From Paramoeba atlantica (Eukaryota; Protista; Discosea), in assembly GCA_977017575.1 (NCBI GenBank), contig CDRNVI010000023.1, positions 62,001 to 126,000 of the forward strand: DNA of 64,000 nt, in the 5' to 3' direction. The notes under the pieces are model-generated. The model did not search any database. It was not told the DNA's origin and saw only the letters and a list, made by a program, of their open reading frames with translations. Made by a program: the position numbers and the translations under genes. Below, one piece after another: positions 17,659 to 57,691 of the stretch (positions within the stretch are counted from its first letter, which is position 1; every line of letters starts with the position of its first letter).

Positions 17659-19341
17659 GGAGCATGGGGATGAGAATGAGCAGTTTTAGCAATTCGCATG
17701 TGAAACTCTAACGCCTCCTTCTTTGGTATCGTCATTTTTCGGTTTGACCTCTAGTGGTAGAAGGTTGTTCTTTCAATGCTTCTTACTGAGGAAACGCTGA
17801 TTCGTCGAAAATTTGGAGTATTCTGTGTTGTGTGTGATGCTCTGTAAAGGACGTGCGCACCGATTCGTTTCCTGAATTCGTTTCCTAAATCTACGATTGT
17901 CAATCATCAAAGATTCCGGGTCACCTGCGCTCAAATTGTACAAACAAAAAAGAACTGACCACTTCGACTACTTTTCAATTTAAAATCGTTCTGAGTACCA
18001 TAAAACAATAATTCCCGAAATTTGAAAGATTGGAGCCCATTCAAAATCACTAGAATATTCTTTAGAATTACATGTATGACAGCGCAGCAAGCTCACTGGG
18101 GGGTAAACTGGGATTTTAGTAGATCTGGGTGATTTTCATCAACTCCAAGTTCCTTCATTAAGACGAAATCCACACCCCTGAAAGCAGCTGGAGGAAAAAT
18201 CACTAACTACTTGATCTAAGCTCTTCTCAAGGAATAAAAGTAGCAATCACTACTTTTTAAATAGTAACTTTGGTAATTACTATTGCGGTGGTTGTAAAAC
18301 TACCGCTCTACCCTCGATTATTGAAAAGAAAAATTAAAAGTGAACAATGAAAATATAAAGAGGAATACAGTAATAAGGAAAAAAATATAAAAGGGGGCTC
18401 CGGTGGTCCAAAATTGAAATAAAAATTGAAAAACAATGGGGGGTCTAGGGGGGGTATACCGCACGATCTTTTTTTGAAAAAATTATTTTTCGAAACAAAC
18501 TCGCAGAAGGGGTGGCCGGGGTCTTGGCGCGCATTTTCCACCCCCCACTCGCACCCTTATCTGTCATATAAGCCGCACCCTTATCTGTCATAAACCAATT
18601 AAAAAAAAGGCGACCCCTTAAAAAAAATTTCAAGGCCTAAAAAAGATTTCAACCCCTAAAAAAAAAATCGACCCCTAAAAAAAATTTCAACCCCTTCCAA
18701 AAATTTACAATTTTGCTACACAGTTAACATAAAAAATAGGTAACCTCAATTGTGCTTCCGGTGAGGCCCCGGAGTTGCGAGAGGCCTCCATACCCCACAA
18801 CTACCACCTTCCCCCCTATTTAGCGGGGGTCGCGCGAGCGACCCCTGATAAATGGGGGGAAGGTGGTAGTTGTTTTGGGGAATATGAGAGGCCGAACGCA
18901 CGGAGGGGCCGGCCGGGCCAATGAGTCACGTCAAAGTGTGACGCTGAGTTCGTGGGAAGCAATTTGCGAAGCCCTAGGTGATGATCAGTTGTATTGGACG
19001 ACACCGAGACAAACCACAGAAATCCCGGATACGACAAGGTCTAGATATCATAAAGAGAGAAAAAACCGGAGCTGTGGACGCGAAAAAGAAGCCCAATTGA
19101 AAAAGTATGAATTTTTTGATACTAATTATTGAGATCAAACTTGCACGCCCAAGGGATCTCTTTTGGGAAATTTCATAAGGAAAGCACAAATGAATAAACA
19201 ATCGAGTTTTATATAATATTTCGCACAAAAGCTTTACTCCATTGTATCAAGATTGCGCACGATTTCCAAGGTGCTAACAATCGCTTCTTCACCAGCAGAT
19301 GAAACTGCTTCATGAGAATTCTCAGAGTCGGGAGAGTCATA

Positions 19342-19955
19342 CAAGAGCGGAGGGCGACACTTTAAAATCTCTTTGTGGAGGCTCAGTGGGGATGTTCGAT
19401 GTTCATGCGCTCGTTGGCGCAGAGATACAGCCCTTGATGCGACAACCGATATCATCGGCACAATCCGTAATGACGGATGTCGCACCAAGGGGATTAGCAC
19501 GGACTCTGTCGGTAGAGGGGGTCCAGGCAACTCGCCCTCTCTTTACGCAGCCGGAGGGGCACACTGCAACCGACTCGGTCCCAGTCGGTAGAGGTGGTCC
19601 AGGCAACTCACCACCTCTTTACGCAGCCGGAGGGGCGCACTGCAACCGACCGCTGCCTCGCGATAAGACGAGGCGGAGCCACGCCCAGTGGTCTTCAAGG
19701 GAGGTCACCATGGCGCATGGCTCCCCGGGAAGGAAAGGGCGCGAAAGGAAGAAATCCGGGGAGGGAAGAAAACTCGCTCAAAGAGTGAGCCGGGGAGGGG
19801 TGATGGGGTGGAAGCGCGTCCCCTACTTTGCCGAGAAAGAGGGACAGTTTCGGCCTTAGTGCCGGCCGGCAACGGGCATATGAACAGTAAGACTATGCCC
19901 GTTGCCGGGGAAAGAAAAGATAAACAAGGTACAGAAACTGTATCTTTATAGCGTT
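19342..19955 (-). mobile_element. SL-headed non-coding retroposon-like insert (3' boundary uncertain, ~19342-19385)
   Basis: The minus strand begins AACGCTATAAAGATACAGTTTCTGTACCTTGTTT immediately after the transposase VLG codons. A 15-bp-stem hairpin, a 76-bp tandem duplication and a 3' motif shared with the HERO-like element follow. Confidence 0.7.
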
Positions 19956-20879
19956 CCCAAGAACTTCTTTTGGACGCTCATTTATTTCAAATGCAACGCG
20001 GCGCACCTCTTCCTGCGACTGGGCAAGAAACGGGAGCTTTTTAGGATAATAGTCGCGCACTAGGCCATTAAAATTTTCAACGCCCCCCTTCTCCCAGCTC
20101 GCATACGGCTTGCAGAAAAAGGAAATGCAGTCATACGCCTGGTTGATTATCTCGTGCTTTGCGAATTCCGTACCATTGTCGTATGTAATGCTTTGCACAC
20201 GGTAGCCTTTGAGAGCTTCAACGATCATGTCAGCCACATGATCTGACTTTTTGTTCTCAAGTTTACGCAGTATTCCAAATCTACTCTTCCGCTCGATCAG
20301 GCTTAAAAGATATCCGCTGTGTTTGGCGCCTTCGATGAGATCAGCTTCCCAATCTCCATATCTCTCTCTGTTGTTTATTATCTCAGGGCGTTCAGAAATA
20401 TCTACACGATTTTGAATACGAAATCGATTCGAGCCACGGCGACGCCGACATCGGCGTGAGCCGCCACGGCGGAGAAAACGTCCCAAGTTTCCACCGTAGC
20501 CTTCATCTCGTTTTATAAAATTATAAATCGCCTTCCGAGATGTACTGATACCATGCTCCTTATTCAGAGTGACACTAATCTGTTGCGGGCTGTATCGCCG
20601 TTCCAGAAGGCTGGTCACTAGTCCAGTTACTTCGCCGTCTACTTTCCGGTGGCGGACCAAGCGCTTTGACATTGTATTCTTCGCCGTTCGTTCGGCCAAG
20701 CGAGGGTCATACACGTTTCGCTTGCAGCCCCGCTTCAATTCACGGCTGAGTCCTGACTGCGTAATCCCTACTTGTTCTGCAATCTCCTCCTGTGACATCT
20801 CTCCGTTATTATATAACAATGCGATATGCGACCGATGAGTTGAATCGATGCGTGTGCTGACTCTACCTTCCACCGTCAT
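19893..20879 (-). CDS. IS30-family (Tra8-like) DDE transposase; C-terminus replaced by the SL-headed insert
   Basis: N-terminal HTH (SQEEIAEQVGITQSGLSRELKR), SPQQIS, DISERPEIINNRERYGDWEAD, SITYDNGTEFAKH, FCKPYASWEKGGVENFNGLVR and INERPKEVLG. D-E spacing is 33. Confidence 0.93.
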   Translation of the reverse strand: MTVEGRVSTRIDSTHRSHIALLYNNGEMSQEEIAEQVGITQSGLSRELKRGCKRNVYDPRLAERTAKNTMSKRLVRHRKVDGEVTGLVTSLLERRYSPQQISVTLNKEHGISTSRKAIYNFIKRDEGYGGNLGRFLRRGGSRRCRRRRGSNRFRIQNRVDISERPEIINNRERYGDWEADLIEGAKHSGYLLSLIERKSRFGILRKLENKKSDHVADMIVEALKGYRVQSITYDNGTEFAKHEIINQAYDCISFFCKPYASWEKGGVENFNGLVRDYYPKKLPFLAQSQEEVRRVAFEINERPKEVLGNAIKIQFLYLVYLFFPRQRA

Positions 20880-20905
20880 TCACAGAAAATTAACAAAAAA
20901 TGTAT

Positions 20906-21064
20906 TATGACAGATAAGGGTGCAGTATGACAGATAAGGGTGCCTTATGACAGATAAGGGTGTATATGACAGACAAGGGTGCATTATGACAGATAAGGGT
21001 GCATTATGACAGATAAGGGTGCATTTATGACAGATAAGGGTGCATTTATGACAGATAAGGGTGC
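20906..21064. repeat. Eight tandem copies of the TIR core TATGACAGATAAGGGTGC (19-21-bp period); two inverted copies at 18551-18591
   Basis: Copies start at 20906, 20926, 20946, 20965, 20985, 21005, 21026 and 21047. Confidence 0.95.
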
Positions 21065-23217
21065 GGGTGCCCCCCCCTACCCGGGGGTGATCCCCGCGCG
21101 CATGCGCAGGACGGGTCCGCCAAGTTCGGATTTTTTCGGAATTTTTTTTTTGAAAAAAAATTCAACTGGGCGAAAAAAATGGCTAAAAAAATATTTTTTC
21201 CAAAATCGTTTCCCCTATTGTATTTTTATAGTTTGAGACCTATACAAGCAGTATAGGCTTTCTCCGCAGTTGTTTTCGCAGGCTAGCTCTTCTTCGAGCC
21301 GTGGTATGCCCGCGAAATTGGCCCATTTTTGACTAAAAGGGATGAAAAAGTATTTTTCACCCCTTTCATTTTTGGACCCCAAGCGGCCCTTTTGGGTCGA
21401 AAAAATGGTGTGGTTGGAGTCGTATTCTCTACCCAATACGGTTGGTAGGCTTTCAGTCCTGCCTACGAGTGATTTCCCGCACGCAAATGTCGGATTTAGT
21501 GCTCTGAGAGCTAAAATACGCAAAAATGGCCTCATTTTTACCCAAAAATCGGCGATTTTTGGCTATAATCATTCTGTTTTCTTCAGCTTTCCAGACCAAA
21601 TTTTCTTTTTTAGGCTCTTCGTTAAACGCGGTGGTAGTTTTCGACGCGAAGATCGCAGCATGAGTGACTTAAGAATGGCTATAAAAAGATTCCAAAATCG
21701 TTTCCCCTATTGTATTTGTATAGTTTGGGACCTATACTAGCCTTCTCCGCAGTTGTTTTCGCAAGATATCTCTTCTTGAGGCCGTGGTATGCCCTCGAAA
21801 ATGGTCTATTTTTGACTAAAAAAGGTGAAAAAGTATGTTTCAGACCCCAAGGGCCCTTTTTGTGTCAAAAGAATCATCGGAAGTCAGCTGTTTCATGCAT
21901 AACCTGTATTTCCTGTAACCCGTTGTGCGCTTTCCACATTGGCACGCATGGCACTCAGCGTTTCCTTGAATGCGCGGGATATCTCTTCAATATTTTTCGG
22001 AGCGGTACTTGCGGGACATACAGTGTACTTGCGCAGTACTTGCGGGACAGTATGTTGGCGGTGACGGGCACGTTTTTGTAATTACAGCGCAGGCATGTCT
22101 CCACATCCACAGTGGTAGATACTGCGTCTTCTGGTTCTTGATACACGAGACAACGCCTAGGAGCCAACACCGAAACGGTTTTTTTTCACATTCCGTACAG
22201 TAAAGCTGCGGAAGAGAATCTTGCCCAGACGTACACCCCTGTCCAGCTTCTGTGATAGAAAAGAAAGGTTATGATATTGGATATTGAATACGTATCTAGC
22301 GTCACTTTTGCGTTATCTAAGCATGCATCAATATATCTTTTAAAAACATAAAAAAAAACCCAAAAATATAAAAAAGCGTCTCTCTGCTTATAAGGACCCC
22401 GAGGAAATGATTGAGCTTTGGGGACGGGCCACAGTTGTGTGGGACGCACTTCCCAGTGCCCTATGCGCGTCCACAGCGAGCAGCATACCTCGCCGTATGA
22501 GAGCGGTGATTGCTGCGAGAGGGGGGCATACAAAGTATTAGTTTTACCTTGTTTTTACCGTTTATTAATCAAGAAATAATCCATCTTTTTATCAAAAAAT
22601 CTTCACTCGAAAAAAGTGTAAAAAATGTCTCAATAATATTTTTCACTCAAGGGTGTTACAGGTCCTCGTACACCCCCGTTCCCCTGTTTTGCCCGGTATT
22701 ATGTGATAAAAAAAGTTTCTGTTTGGGTCTAAAGAGTGGTTTTTCGGCATAATTAGGTGATGCCCTACCAGGGAAAAATATGCCTATAGTCAAACCGCAT
22801 GCGATAAACATGGGAGGAAGGGCAAAAATCTGAGAATTTGCTCATCTGGGCAGTGAAAAAAATCCTGTGAAACTTTTCAAAAATTCTCATCTTCAAGTAA
22901 AATAACTCGGTTTAATAGGAAAGGAAGATCCGAGGAGTCTGCAGGCCATCCTGGGAGAGTGTGAGAGCCTACTCTTTGTTTTAGGTGGAGGAGATTTCAT
23001 CATCAATGCTCGTGTCTTGTCAAAGACGTGTCATCTCTGAAAGAAGAACATCGAAAAGAAAAAGAAAAATTACTTTTTTTTTTAAATTTTGTCAAAGGCA
23101 GACGCGGTTTTCACAGAGATATAAATACTTAAACATGTTCCTCTGAACTAGAACTTGCAGAAAGTTGCATAATTTCTATCGAAATACTAAAGTGGATGAA
23201 ATATTCACTGTAGTATT

Positions 23218-52923: not shown

Positions 52924-53052
52924 TATAAGTATATTAGTCGCGAGGTTGTTCGATATTCATGCAGTTTAACTGCAGAGATTGATACCTAGAAGATGCATGA
53001 CTAGCACGCAATCCTCGCACAAAACGAGTTTCTCCTAGGTTTTTAAAACTCT

Positions 53053-56000
53053 TCACCAGCACGTGCCCTCACTCCACTGCTCAATGTCGCGATTATTAAA
53101 ATTTTTGAAACTGCCACTAAGGGCTCTTGTTGCCATATGCTGACGACATCGCGAGGCGGTGGCCTTGTTTCCACCAAAAAGGGAGTTCAGTGCTCGAGTT
53201 GAGCTGTTGAGCTTTCCCCTGGCACCTACTTCAATGGCCAGGAGAAAAGTGGCTGGGTTCGACATTTTCCGCTGTAGATACATATGTCCATACTTCTGCA
53301 TCTTCCGTTCGTGTGAGGAGATAAAGTTTTCCTCCCACGGAGATGTCAGTTCGAGTATGAACTCAGAACCGTTCTTAAGTTGGACCCATCCATCAGGTCG
53401 GAGGGACGATTCTTGCCCGCTCAGCCAGGTTGGCGGATTCTGATGGTGAGCGAGGTCAAAGTGATACTGTGCGGTTTCGGGGGATTGTCGAATAGCATCT
53501 GCAAGGGCGTGTAGAATGAGGTTGTGTCGGAAGGTATACCGCCCCTGTTGCAGGGCGGCCTTGCAGCCTGTTAGAACGTGGCGCACAGTTTGTACGTCTT
53601 CTGTGCAAATGGGGCATTTACGGTTCGTGTGGGAACTGAGGCTCCAGCGGTGTAAGGCGGATCGGGTCGGAAGCGGGGTCTGTGTCAGAACAGATGAAGC
53701 AAATCTGGAGAGCGACGTACTTTTAATATTGCACAGAGCAGCAGCGAAGTCTTTCGCGAGGTCGTCTTCTGTAGCCATGCGAAACCACTGCCCCGCGATT
53801 GGTGCTCGACGCTGCACAGCTTCTGAGAGATGTCTTTCGTATTCATGTTCAATGTACTGCCGTGTCGATGCGTGATTTCCACTGCGGTCGTACAACTCGA
53901 CGACTGGTCGCACTTGTCCGGAAGAACGTTTGTCGTGTTCACGACGGATGCGATATCTCAGCGCTTGTTGCACTGCTGGATCACGAGATTTTTTCATCTG
54001 TTGAACTGCTGTGCCTGTGCAGAGTAACCAAAGCTTAGACAGGCTGGTGAGAGCCCAGCCGCGTTCAGAGTACAGAACTTCGCTCGTAGCTGTTTTGGCC
54101 ATGTTTATCCATTTTCGAATGTGTCTCGTCGCATATTTTTGTAGTCGAAGGATAAAGTTTAGTGTGATTCCTGGATTGACCGTGAGCACATATCGCAGGC
54201 GAGATATGATTACGTTATTATAGGCCCAGAGACGAGCGGGGGTATCTAGGGCACTATTGGATACATTGTTCAACCAAAATCGTAGCTGCTTTAGGAGACT
54301 TTTGAACAGCACCTTCCCTTGTTGGGCCCCCGGCGCGAGTGTCATACCTAGGAACTGACTTCCTTTGTCGCAAACGTTGGGAATACTCTCACCGTATGCC
54401 AAGATACGGGGTCTGTGGGTCTTATATCCGCCTTCTGCTACAGACATGTGTTGGAGACGACATTTCGGTACGTTAAGGAGCATGCCTAACCTGGAAAGCA
54501 TGTTCACCAGGGCGTTCGTCACGTGTTGCATTTCTTCAGCCGAGTTCGTGATGATAGCCAGATCGTCTGCAAAGGCTTTTAAGAACGACTCTTGGTTGCC
54601 CCATTTAATACCATAGCTAGGGAAGCTCGATCGGAGATATCGTAGAACCACTTCCATCGCGAGATTGAATAGTACGGGGGATAGTGTGTCGCCCTGGAGG
54701 ACACCTCGTTTGACGGGGATGTGTTTGGTCAGCCCTTCCGAACATTTGATCCGGATAGTCGCATCATGGTATAGGGAGCGGATGTACGCGATGATTTGAG
54801 GTGATACCTTTGCCCACGTTAGGACTTGAAAGAGAATGGAGTGTGGGAGAGAACCAAACGCGTTCTTTAAGTCAAATTGACCAAGGCAGTATTGTCGTTT
54901 ATGCTGTCGTTGAAAGTCCAATAGTTCACAGAGTGACTGGGTATGCTCGATAGTTCCATTTACGTTTGGCAAAAATCCTTTTTGTATGGTTGTGTCAATT
55001 ATTCCTGTCGTCACAGCATGGCTCAAGATTCTGTGGCCAATAATGGAGTGGAGTAACTTACCAAGGCAGCTCGTAAGACTGATGGGTCTCCAGTTGGACA
55101 ATTGGTTGGGAGCTCCGCCTTTGTGAATGAGTCGGGTGGCGGCCTGTTTCCAATAGGGAGGGCTGACCGAATGCTTTAGTACGTCATTGAAGACTTGCGC
55201 GATGAACGGGTAGAGCTCTTCGCAGCGTCGAAGAAATGCGTTTCCTACGTTATCGGAGCCTGGGGCAGCCGAGGGGCGTTTCGAGGAGATTGCCACTGCT
55301 ATGGTTGGTACGTCGATTGCTTCCCATTCCATTGCATTCTCTAGATCCAGGCCAAGGAGGTTTGTTGGAGGTAGACTATGATCTTCCGTGTCTGTGCTTA
55401 ACGATTCTTGGAAAAATGTTTCGATAGCTGCTTGCGAGCAGTCTGGAAAGGTTGCCGGCTGATTTACCAGTTGCTCGTTCTTGTCAAGACACTCTCCGGC
55501 TGCTGTCTAAGGGTTTCTTTGGAACCTGTCCATCATCCAGCGTTTCTCTCGTTCTTGTTTGACTAGTTTCGCTTCTTCCGTGTACAGCTTATGCGCTTTG
55601 GTCGCTTCTTTTATGTTGCCGATCAAGCGGTCCCTTTCTGAGCGTCCGTGGGTAAAGGAAAGAGTACGTTTCAGTTGACGGATGTGTCCTGCTAGTTGCT
55701 TCGCAGAGCGGTCATAGCTAAGGGGTCGTGTGGGGCGTTTCGCATGGCCAATTTTGGAGCGCAATTTGAACCCTTTGGTGGGGTCGAGTTCCCGTACAAC
55801 TTCATAAACCGAGACCGCCATGCAAGCTGTCAGTAATTCCGTATGTAGTAGGGCTTCGCTCGGGGTTGATGCAGGCTTTAAGTACTTTTTACATCTATCC
55901 ATGGCCTTCTTTATTGCCAGCTGCCATTGGTCCTGTGAGAGGCTTATCATGACCCGCCCTCCTTCGATCGTACGCATGGTGCTTAACAAGTATTCAGCCG

Positions 56001-57453
56001 TCTCGGTGTCTAATATGTTTTCATTTCGAGATCTATTCCTCTGTGAGTTCAGGATCGTGCTGTCATTCGGCCCGTGGGTCTGCCGTGGTCCGCCCCGCGG
56101 TGGGAGAGTCTGGGTAAGCGTCTGTGTGTTACTTTCAGTTCCGAAGGTTGGCGCTGGTTCCGAGGTTACGTTGTTCACCGGTGGATGTGCTGGTTGTCGT
56201 GGAGACTGATTGATGCGGGTTTCTTCGGAGGCATTTGTGGAGCGTCTTTCGTGGCGCTGATCTCGTGGTGAACTCCGTGCGGCGCCTATTTTGGTTTCTA
56301 CCTGTCTTTGGGGCTCAAAAGATACGGATCTTTCGCTGTGACCAGCAGGTGCTTGTCCGTTTGTCTCGTTGTTAGACAGATTCCACGAGAAGAGGTTGCG
56401 TAGGCTCCAGCGGGTGGGTTCCTGCCGAGCGTCCTGAGGGCGGCTGAGTACTCCCTCCTTACAACATTGGTGTTTGCATTCGGCCTTGTTGCGGCATACG
56501 TACTTGCAGGGCCTGCGCGAGAGTTCTTGTTCTTCCGACGTTGTTATGTGATGCAGATTTCTGTCTGGCGGTGTCTGAGTGCGTGGGGCGGGTGAGGGAG
56601 GGGTGGCAATTACTGTTGTTTCTTCGTTTAGGGATTCAAGTCTTCTAGGGTCGATCTTTACCCCAATCTTGCAACACATGTGCTTACATTGTTGCTTGTT
56701 TTGGCAAATGTGTTTACATGATCGTCGAGGTGTCGCGCATGTGCTAGACGTTTGTTCATCTCGAAGCCATGGTGTAGCATCAGGCCTGGCATCAGACTTT
56801 TGGATTGCACTATCTGCTCTCTGCATATCTGGGTGAGGTGAGGGGTGGTCCATAGGTTCGGGGTCAATACTGATCTTGCAACATTGGTGGAAGCATATGC
56901 GCTTGTTCAAAAATCGATGAGAACACGGTTGAGTACGGCTGGGTCGAGCTTCGTGGTTGGGGGTTGGTTCGTCCGTTGTACGAGGCAGCGGATGACTTCT
57001 GTTTGGTGCATGGCCACCCGGTTCCTCTGGACGATTGTTGGTGAGCTCGGGTTCCATCCCAACTTTGCAACACGGGTGGAGACAGGTGCGTTTATTCGAG
57101 CAGCGGTGGGCACAAGGTTGTTGCCGCACTGTCCGCGTTCCTTGTGCCGCCGCCTGATTGGGCTTCCGGATCAGGAAAGGTTCGCCGTACTCAATCCTAG
57201 TTCTTTCCCAAGAGCCTTCATCGTGTACTTCCTTAGTGTGGACGTGGGTTAGGTCGAACGCCGCAAGTCCCGAGATGTTGTTCCCAGCCAGTTTCTTCTT
57301 GATGGCGCGTCCAAGGGTTCCAGGACAAGAGTACTGTTTATCTAGCTGTAGAGATGCGTCTGCGTGTGCTGTCGCCCAGCTAGTGTGCCGGAATATCCTG
57401 TGTGGCGGTGCAATTTCGCGGAATACGAAATGTTCGCATGCTTCCTCGTTCAT
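53053..57453 (-). CDS. Single long retrotransposon ORF (~1466 codons) split by one in-frame TAG at 55507-55509
   Basis: Manual translation across 55507-55332 stays in frame: DRFQRNP*TAAGECLDK...IETFFQES...AMEWEAID. Confidence 0.8.
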
Positions 57454-57655
57454 TACGTCTTGTAAAGTGCATTTTTCTACTAATATACCATCAGACCGCT
57501 TTGCTCCTGTTTCAAGGGTTCGTGCTAAGGAAAGTTCCGCTGAAATTTCGGCATTGAAGGGGACCTCGAGGGAGGTCGCCTTGCGCCTGGGGGGCAGAGG
57601 TAGTGGTGTGGAGTGACATGCCCCTGTAGGGGTGACAACAGTTAGTACAAAAGAT

Positions 57656-57691
57656 CAACAAGGTACAGAAACTGTATCTTTATGCGTGGTT
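57656..57691 (-). other. Spliced-leader exon-like sequence
   Basis: AACCACGCATAAAGATACAGTTTCTGTACCTTGTTG, followed by ATCTTTTG rather than a GT donor. Confidence 0.75.

Follow-up and report, generated by a model that had tools for sequence, protein, structure and literature searches.

What interrupts the IS30-like transposase gene on the minus strand of this Paramoeba atlantica DNA, and how did a piece of a spliced leader (SL) come to lie inside it? The question arises in a stretch of 64,000 nucleotides (nt), called the window below, in which the codons for INERPKEVLG are directly followed on the minus strand by AACGCTATAAAGATACAGTTTCTGTACCTTGTTT (AACGCTATAAAGATACAGTTTCTGTACCTTGTTTATC...). 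The original prediction took this string for the start of a retroposon resembling a short interspersed nuclear element (SINE), 614 bp long (19342-19955), and proposed that a trans-spliced non-coding RNA had been reverse-transcribed up to its cap. The string is real, and the 16-mer GATACAGTTTCTGTAC matches the SL; chance predicts 0.03 occurrences in the window, which holds two on its minus strand, at 19929-19944 and 57663-57678. Judging from sequence comparison, we consider, with a probability of about 0.78, that the insert belongs to a young family of non-coding, non-autonomous retroposons, mobilized in trans by an R2-like retrotransposon without long terminal repeats (non-LTR). The features are collected in Table 1.

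The borders of the insert were set by comparison with two uninterrupted IS30-like copies, L062 and L063, which lack the insert and read ...GGGAACGCT/TCCCCAC... at the empty site (a slash marks a junction here and below) and ...cttgggaacgct/tccccactgagcc... across the insertion point. L062 has an intact open reading frame (ORF) of 362 amino acids (aa) with 100% aa identity to the window copy, and L063 is 97% identical; the three copies are near-identical, L062 (G000:C5:184719-187966) corresponding to window region 18546-21069. The insert runs from 19949 (5' end) to 19393 (3' end), and these borders are unambiguous because the flanking bases differ at both junctions. The six bases AACGCT (19950-19955) are therefore transposase-gene sequence and lie outside the insert. 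The transposase frame picks up again at 19392 (..LGNA/SPLSLHKEILKCRPPLLYDSP...) and not, as had been proposed, with YDSP at 19341, which lies 17 codons further downstream; the insert is accordingly 557 bp long. Relative to the two empty sites, the window insert lacks a target-site duplication, and no target bases are missing. The insertion has cut the transposase from 362 aa to 328 aa (ORF 19893-20879, with the rve core and a helix-turn-helix).

Table 1. Coordinates of the insert, the interrupted gene and the candidate partner element in the window (SL, spliced leader; LINE, long interspersed nuclear element; RT, reverse transcriptase)
Feature	Position	Strand	Remarks
Whole insert, non-autonomous retroposon, SINE-like, subfamily A, short-form-like	19393-19949	-	557 bp; empty-site comparison
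SL-derived head ATAAAGATACAGTTTCTGTACCTTGTT, SL nt 11-37 (of 38)	19923-19949	-	L081 SL RNA gene and 30-copy alignment
Perfect 15-bp hairpin, CCGGCAACGGGCATA / TATGCCCGTTGCCGG, just after the head	19866-19908	-	Sequence, fold, alignment; conserved in the family
Internal tandem duplication, ~75 bp	19500-19650	-	19576-19650 vs 19500-19574, 89% alike; self-BLAST
3' module ATCTCTGC-GCCAACGAGC-GCATGAACATC plus terminus GAACA	19393-19426	-	Common to the LINE 3' end
Interrupted IS30-like transposase gene, 5' part	19950-20879	-	rve integrase core and helix-turn-helix
Interrupted IS30-like transposase gene, 3' part	19234-19392	-	SPLSLHKEIL...DTME, stop; L062 362-aa ORF
Candidate autonomous partner, R2-like non-LTR retrotransposon	52947-57683	-	4.74 kb; 33 kb from the insert
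LINE head, SL nt 11-38	57656-57683	-	Second SL core of the window
LINE ORF1	55507-57453	-	648 aa
LINE ORF2	53053-55332	-	759 aa; RT, CCHC finger, restriction-like endonuclease

The SL of the organism was read from SL RNA gene arrays linked to 5S rRNA genes and is 38 nt long (AACTTTAACGATAAAGATACAGTTTCTGTACCTTGTTG). The 45.7-Mb assembly contains its core ACAGTTTCTGTAC at 811 sites, and TTTAACGATAAAGATACAGTTTCTGTACCTTGTTGGT is present in 49 exact copies, mostly in regular arrays. The SL unit at L081 (G000:C107:4200-7000) is 2.56 kb long and reads ...cccttgttAACTTTAACGATAAAGATACAGTTTCTGTACCTTGTTG/GTATGAGAAGC..., with 5S rRNA encoded on the opposite strand; the neighboring array stretch holds the same type of unit with point variants, and A17G and A30C were seen among the SL genes. 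What looked like a gap of 7.7 kb in the SL array of C97 turned out to consist of two A17G SL genes without any insertion.

Compared with this SL, the head of the window insert runs from A11 to T37 (27 bases), and position G38 reads T. For the 5' part of the string, the true SL does not match: AACGCTAT had been equated with SL nt 5-12, whereas nt ~7-16 in the SL RNA gene are AACGATAAAG, not AACGCTATTA. The supposed start at nt 5 arose because the SL of Trypanosoma cruzi had been used for the comparison and the six transposase-gene bases abutting the insert happen to resemble a trypanosome SL. The mechanism tied to that start, in which the enzyme copies a trans-spliced RNA up to the cap, stops at the cap-4 nt 1-4 and so leaves copies that begin at nt 5, could draw on the likeness of AACGCTAT... 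to nt 5-12 of trypanosome SLs, and also on the SL copies of mRNA type in this genome (described below), which do reach ~nt 2-3, so that stops near the cap exist. Against it stand the empty sites, the organism's own SL and the starts of other heads. Among 63 tabulated family loci, the head begins at nt 3 in one, nt 6 in three, nt 8 in one, nt 9 in one, nt 10 in nine, nt 11 in 25, nt 12 in six, nt 13 in five, nt 14 in four, nt 15 in two, nt 17 in three, nt 18 in one and nt 20 in two. The starts thus range from nt 3 to nt 20 with a mode at nt 11, and nt 10-12 account for 40/63; no locus starts at nt 5, and a single one starts at or before it. Stalling at the cap is thereby refuted as an explanation for this element, and what survives of the original prediction is the general idea that an SL-carrying non-coding RNA was reverse-transcribed.

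Support for that general idea comes from the junction between SL and body, which falls exactly after G38, the end of the SL exon, in three types of sequence. The long form of the retroposon reads ...CCTTGTTG/GTACATTTT, that is SL/GTACATTTTCCCTTTAGTTCATC, and can be written as SL/GTACATTTTCCCTTTAG/TTCATC; the short form, SL/TTCATC, was found at L032 and L034 and at ~12 loci genome-wide; and the partner LINE described below has SL/ATCTTTTG. The host SL is therefore joined to foreign sequence at the precise exon end, as in SL relics, although G38 reads T in the window copy. The long and short forms differ by 17 nt, GTACATTTTCCCTTTAG, a segment bounded by GT and AG with a pyrimidine tract ending in AG. 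Trans-splicing at that acceptor would strip this segment from a long-form transcript, and the difference points to splicing of an RNA intermediate. Ragged 5' ends, 3' A-runs and an RT-encoding partner with the same head and tail also support an RNA copy.

Could the head instead derive from an SL RNA gene or its unspliced transcript, the insert being an SL RNA pseudogene or an SL-RNA-derived SINE? The absence of a GT donor after the SL, on which the original prediction relied, holds for the window copy and fails for most other family copies, which have GT after the SL (GGTACATTTT); ~170 copies continue with GTA, as the SL RNA gene does (GTATGAG). Furthermore, in every SL array unit an old, degenerate copy of the element lies in the reverse direction, 350 bp beyond the 3' side of the SL gene. 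However, past the GTA, a 1-in-64 coincidence, the following bases are unlike the SL RNA intron, and no intron variant of an SL RNA gene matches GTACATTTTCCCTTTAG...; the junctions are exon-precise, and the short form and the LINE join the SL exon directly to other sequence. Neither the promoter nor SL nt 1-10 is present, and the window copy has no GT. The conclusion that the insert is not an SL RNA gene stands, and an origin from one is quite unlikely.

The element is one of many. At least 40 near-full-length relatives of the insert were scored, its 3' end GCGCCAACGAGCGCATGAACATC has ~87 genome occurrences at no more than two mismatches, and heads of the type SL plus GTACATTTT number 171 genome-wide when the sister subfamily B is counted in. 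Subfamily B (e.g., L022) is 84% identical to subfamily A in the 5' half and has a different center and a related tail. Divergence from the consensus is 0.2-3.7% among 30 aligned copies (3.4% for the window copy), and the family is young. Across the two subfamilies the head plus GTACATTTT is 37/37 identical, whereas the next 260 nt are 84% identical, a contrast suggesting that the head is either under selection or renewed. Several copies, L047, L057, L059, L060, L050 and others, lie just upstream of coding sequence of the form AAT/AAC nnn TTn AGT GGT, which looks like leucine-rich-repeat (LRR) motifs; the target of the window copy (GGGAACGCT/TCCCCAC) is not of this type. The old (~85%), reversed copy found in each SL/5S array unit (L081; L128, G000:C97:20800-28700) has no head and follows a (CT)n run.

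Hundreds of SL copies have poly(A) in front of them and do resemble complementary DNA (cDNA), and one may ask whether cDNA or chimeric reads were built into the assembly. Yet the filled junction and the element were also recovered in contigs of independent public sequencing runs, dozens of family copies have distinct genomic flanks and several of them lie in duplicated loci, and the old copy has been homogenized within the SL/5S array. An assembly artefact has hardly any probability left.

The body of the element is GC-rich, and the whole element folds far better than shuffled sequences (z = -6.85). No ORF was found on the element strand besides the read-in from the IS30-like gene. Rfam gave no match in the whole window at the gathering score, be it to tRNA, 5S, 7SL, a ribozyme or the R2 element, and just two chance-level matches at the permissive E <= 1 in 19300-20000. 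Without a tRNA, 7SL or 5S part, the element is not a classical SINE derived from RNA polymerase III transcripts. What it has is the profile of a non-autonomous partner: it lacks coding capacity of its own, and its 3' end is common to an RT-encoding element of the same genome.

That element, a LINE, lies on the same strand of the window. Its 3' end reads ...CTGCATGAATATCGAACA, and this border was set by ~15 other copies that stop at ...CTGCATGAATATC plus an A-run. The 5' border was placed by the SL head and the arrangement of the ORFs, together with a weak similarity of the flanks, ACC[A/T]CGC (9/10 when ACAACC[A/T]CGC is taken), that could at most represent a target-site duplication. ORF1 has no Pfam match and contains four cysteine-rich repeats, C-x3-C-x-NK-x2-C-x-H-x-CCK-x-G (CxxxCxNKxxCxHxCCK), which may form a nucleic-acid-binding or zinc-knuckle-like domain. 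ORF2 matches Pfam RVT_1 (4.6e-31) and zf-RVT, and its best solved relatives are R2 proteins (9nl3, 8gh6 and others; E 5e-31 to 8e-24) and LINE-1 ORF2. In its C-terminal part the motifs CPIC-x8-H-x4-C, RHN, E and RPD-x13-E follow one another; this order agrees with the restriction-like endonuclease motif published for SLACS and CRE (PMC12857005), although two of the spacings do not fall within the ranges published for it. The database relatives of ORF2 comprise metagenomic proteins without a name, proteins of R2 type and, from the transcriptome of a prokinetoplastid culture, a fragment of 50% identity; the names SLACS, CZAR and CRE do not occur among them.

The LINE and the SINE-like element share both ends. 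Their first 35 nt are common (34/35), and their last 33 nt align as ATCTCTGC, a 5-bp stem-loop and GCATGAAYATC(A)n. The tail reaches a local score of 16, which was matched by 0/5000 shuffles, and its best match along the 4.7-kb LINE is the very 3' end of the LINE. Within this module the SINE has the stem UGCGC/GCGCA and the LINE UGCAG/CUGCA, so that two changes (G-C to A-U, C-G to G-C) are compensatory. A rare terminus, ATCGAACA, replaces ATCAAAAY, and genome-wide it is confined to one LINE and its duplicate and to two SINEs of different 5' forms including the window copy; the sites are 19393-19400, 52947-52954, G000:C49:456258-456275 (a long-form SINE) and G000:C14:216282-216296. Going by these termini, the mobilizing LINE may supply the last bases through a template switch at the shared GCATGAAYATC.

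The ends of the copies bear on the mode of insertion. The 3' ends read ...GAACATC followed by 3-10 A, mostly with a pyrimidine thereafter. Tail-to-head tandems were found, both of LINE and SINE (LINE-AAAAA-AGATACAG...SINE, L086) and of two SINEs (L054). A target-site duplication of 15 bp is present at L032 and one of perhaps 5-8 bp in a few copies; in most copies none was detected by exact-match search. At several 5' junctions, 8-13 bp of upstream target is duplicated in tandem, sometimes with an SL fragment between both copies (L050, L060, L104, L106, L107, L109, L117 and L025; e.g., tccggccgt-AAGATACA-tccggccgt/ATAAAG...), which looks like template jumping or an aborted first try at the 5' junction. 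Stacked SLs were found neither in the window copy nor in the 63 tabulated loci, each of which has one head. The R2 element is known for variable 5' junctions, little or no target duplication and end-to-end template jumping, and template jumping of the R2 type would explain the tail-to-head tandems.

Clean insertion without target duplication, in the window and in most copies, would also suit an element moving as DNA (Helitron-, IS200/605- or Crypton-like) or a DNA fragment captured during repair. DNA transposons have fixed ends, however, whereas the 5' ends here are ragged over ~15 nt and the 3' A-runs vary in length; at least one copy (L032) has the 15-bp duplication, there are neither terminal inverted repeats nor a transposase, and head and tail are common to an RT-encoding element. 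Movement at the DNA level is highly improbable.

Mobilization in trans by the R2-like LINE might have proceeded as follows. The founder RNA of the family would have been trans-spliced by the host like an mRNA, and the leader-bearing RNA would then have been reverse-transcribed, a second splicing event at the internal AG giving rise to the short form. The RT of the LINE would recognize the shared 3' module and prime on nicked target DNA, and joining of the cDNA end to upstream DNA would produce the variable 5' end and the usual lack of target duplication.

Several points weigh against this account. The borders of the 17-nt segment are ambiguous by one G, and a DNA deletion is an alternative for it. 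The tail match between LINE and SINE is short (~33 nt), and the actual driver may be another LINE family of the genome. Target duplications are missing from most copies, unlike in many LINE-driven SINEs. No AG acceptor lies directly before the body in any genomic copy, and a head-less source locus (AG/GTACATTTT...) was not found in the assembly; both results count against renewal of the leader by ordinary trans-splicing at that junction. Finally, the element appears in no run on record as RNA. The one run that may be RNA gave just a 36-nt SL-like match inside an unrelated 825-nt contig. This very deep contig, from a 2015 run under the same species label, reads ...GGTAACG/ATAAAGATACAGTTTCTGTAC... 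with three differences and probably represents SL RNA, as gene or as transcript, from a related strain or species.

Some of these points fit a different history, in which the SL was captured once and is now inherited and selected as a promoter, protein-binding site or homology arm, the RNAs starting near nt 11 without ongoing trans-splicing. The missing acceptor and the missing head-less source locus agree with it, the 37/37 identity of head plus GTACATTTT between the subfamilies (84% downstream) would reflect constraint, and the sharp mode at nt 10-12 suits a master copy starting there. The position also equals the nt 11/12 insertion site of SLACS and CZAR when counted from the ACAG core (PMC5814959). 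On the other hand, the longer heads in the family (nt 3, 6, 8 and 9) need templates with more SL, the short form requires a second, splicing-like event, and no SL gene interrupted at nt 10/11 exists in the assembly. We regard a single capture as possible but doubtful.

A related proposal goes further and is equally tentative: the half-leader head would be a maintained functional part of the LINE/SINE system rather than a passive scar, and the elements would be SL-gene-specific by descent or working mode. They might carry the downstream half of a former target as their own 5' end, and the host leader, whether renewed by trans-splicing or selected, might define, cap or integrate that end. The start of the heads at nt 11, 8 nt upstream of the ACAG core, is presumably homologous to the SLACS/CZAR site when the trypanosome SL is used for the comparison. 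If the proposal is correct, it would amount to a promoter-free 5'-end strategy for retrotransposons under polycistronic transcription.

Returning to the preferred reading, a non-autonomous element driven by the R2-like LINE, we compared it with known systems. RIME/ingi and NARTc/L1Tc of trypanosomes, like SINEs that borrow a "stringent" LINE tail, are non-autonomous partners of LINEs with which they share ends. The element described here is likewise short, non-coding and multicopy, and has its first and last tens of bases in common with an RT element; by analogy, the 3' stem-loop and tail are likely the recognition site. Its body, in contrast to those partners, is unrelated to the LINE, it has no tRNA, 7SL or 5S part, and it mostly lacks target duplications. 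In the systems with Pr77 (for L1Tc, NARTc and Pr77 see PMC5814959 and PMC8190864) the situation differs again, as the shared 5' end here is host SL nt 11-38 and not an element-specific promoter or ribozyme. The driver here also has a restriction-like endonuclease, as opposed to the apurinic/apyrimidinic endonuclease of the LINE/partner systems compared.

CRE1/CRE2, SLACS and CZAR are site-specific retrotransposons in the SL RNA genes of trypanosomatids, and SLACS and CZAR insert between SL nt 11 and 12 (PMC5814959). The present elements resemble them in a similar type of host and in an RT followed by CCHC, RHN, E and RPD..E in the same order, and the modal head start, 8 nt upstream of the ACAG core, coincides with the SLACS/CZAR insertion point. 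They differ in being dispersed (in an IS30 gene, LRR genes and elsewhere) while the SL RNA genes are uninterrupted, in carrying the SL piece at their own 5' end rather than having it as 3' flank, and in that the named relatives of ORF2 are R2-type. A search of the assembly for SL genes interrupted after nt 10 (a pattern of upstream sequence plus SL nt 1-10) returned none, only two point-variant SL genes. Because no SL gene is interrupted at nt 10/11, the site specificity of CRE, SLACS and CZAR is not found here, and by target the element is outside that SL-gene-specific group.

With R2 the LINE shares a homologous RT and an endonuclease C-terminal to it. R2 is specific for 28S ribosomal DNA, and its 5' end is generated through co-transcription followed by cleavage by a ribozyme, whereas no ribozyme family was matched here (Rfam). 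The nearest precedents for the head itself are SL-relic retrogenes in dinoflagellates (PMC5585692) and partial SLs at LTR and LINE loci of flatworms, the latter a one-sentence suggestion without junction analysis (PMC12582326). In both, as here, retro-copied sequence that opens with a DNA copy of the host SL is taken to prove a trans-spliced RNA intermediate; here, however, the carrier is a LINE with its non-autonomous partner in a kinetoplastid-type organism, and the head is cut to ~nt 11-38. A literature search for SL-headed retroelements in kinetoplastids found none, the flatworm and dinoflagellate cases being the closest.

SL copies of another type are abundant in the genome. Hundreds of near-complete SLs (from nt 2-3) stand before a 5' untranslated region and ATG, often directly after poly(A), and by their arrangement look like mRNA retrocopies joined tail-to-head; examples are L001-L021 and L024-L028 (G000:C1, C2), one of which is a 5.09-kb tandem gene array with an SL in each unit. 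The base before CTTTAACG in these copies is very often T, as against A (A2) in the SL gene, a change that may reflect misreading of a modified cap nucleotide. While these mRNA-type heads reach SL nt 2-3, the LINE and SINE heads stop near nt 11.

IS30-like transposases, to which the interrupted gene belongs, have 130 protein matches in the genome, among them several intact ORFs of 315-362 aa with 43-100% identity. This suggests that a bacterial-type IS30 element was recently active in a eukaryote-type genome. The IS30-like element is flanked by short tandem repeats (MTDKGA-coding units).

In kinetoplastids, the known routes by which such elements obtain a 5' end are an internal promoter or ribozyme (Pr77, L1Tc/ingi) or residence in SL RNA genes (SLACS, CZAR, CRE). 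Here, a LINE and its short hitch-hiker have DNA copies that open with the host SL at splice-precise junctions. The present analysis establishes exactly how the non-autonomous family is built, proves the insertion by empty sites, tabulates where the heads start, distinguishes a long from a short splice form, and describes a covarying 3' module shared with the LINE. The family is young and hits genes, with copies less than 1% from the consensus, which makes it a usable system for the study of promoter-free 5'-end definition and for asking why copying ends near leader nt 11, and its 33-nt covarying 3' module is a concrete candidate for the template choice of an R2-like enzyme. These results indicate that under polycistronic transcription the RNAs of mobile elements can be processed like mRNA and written back into the genome.

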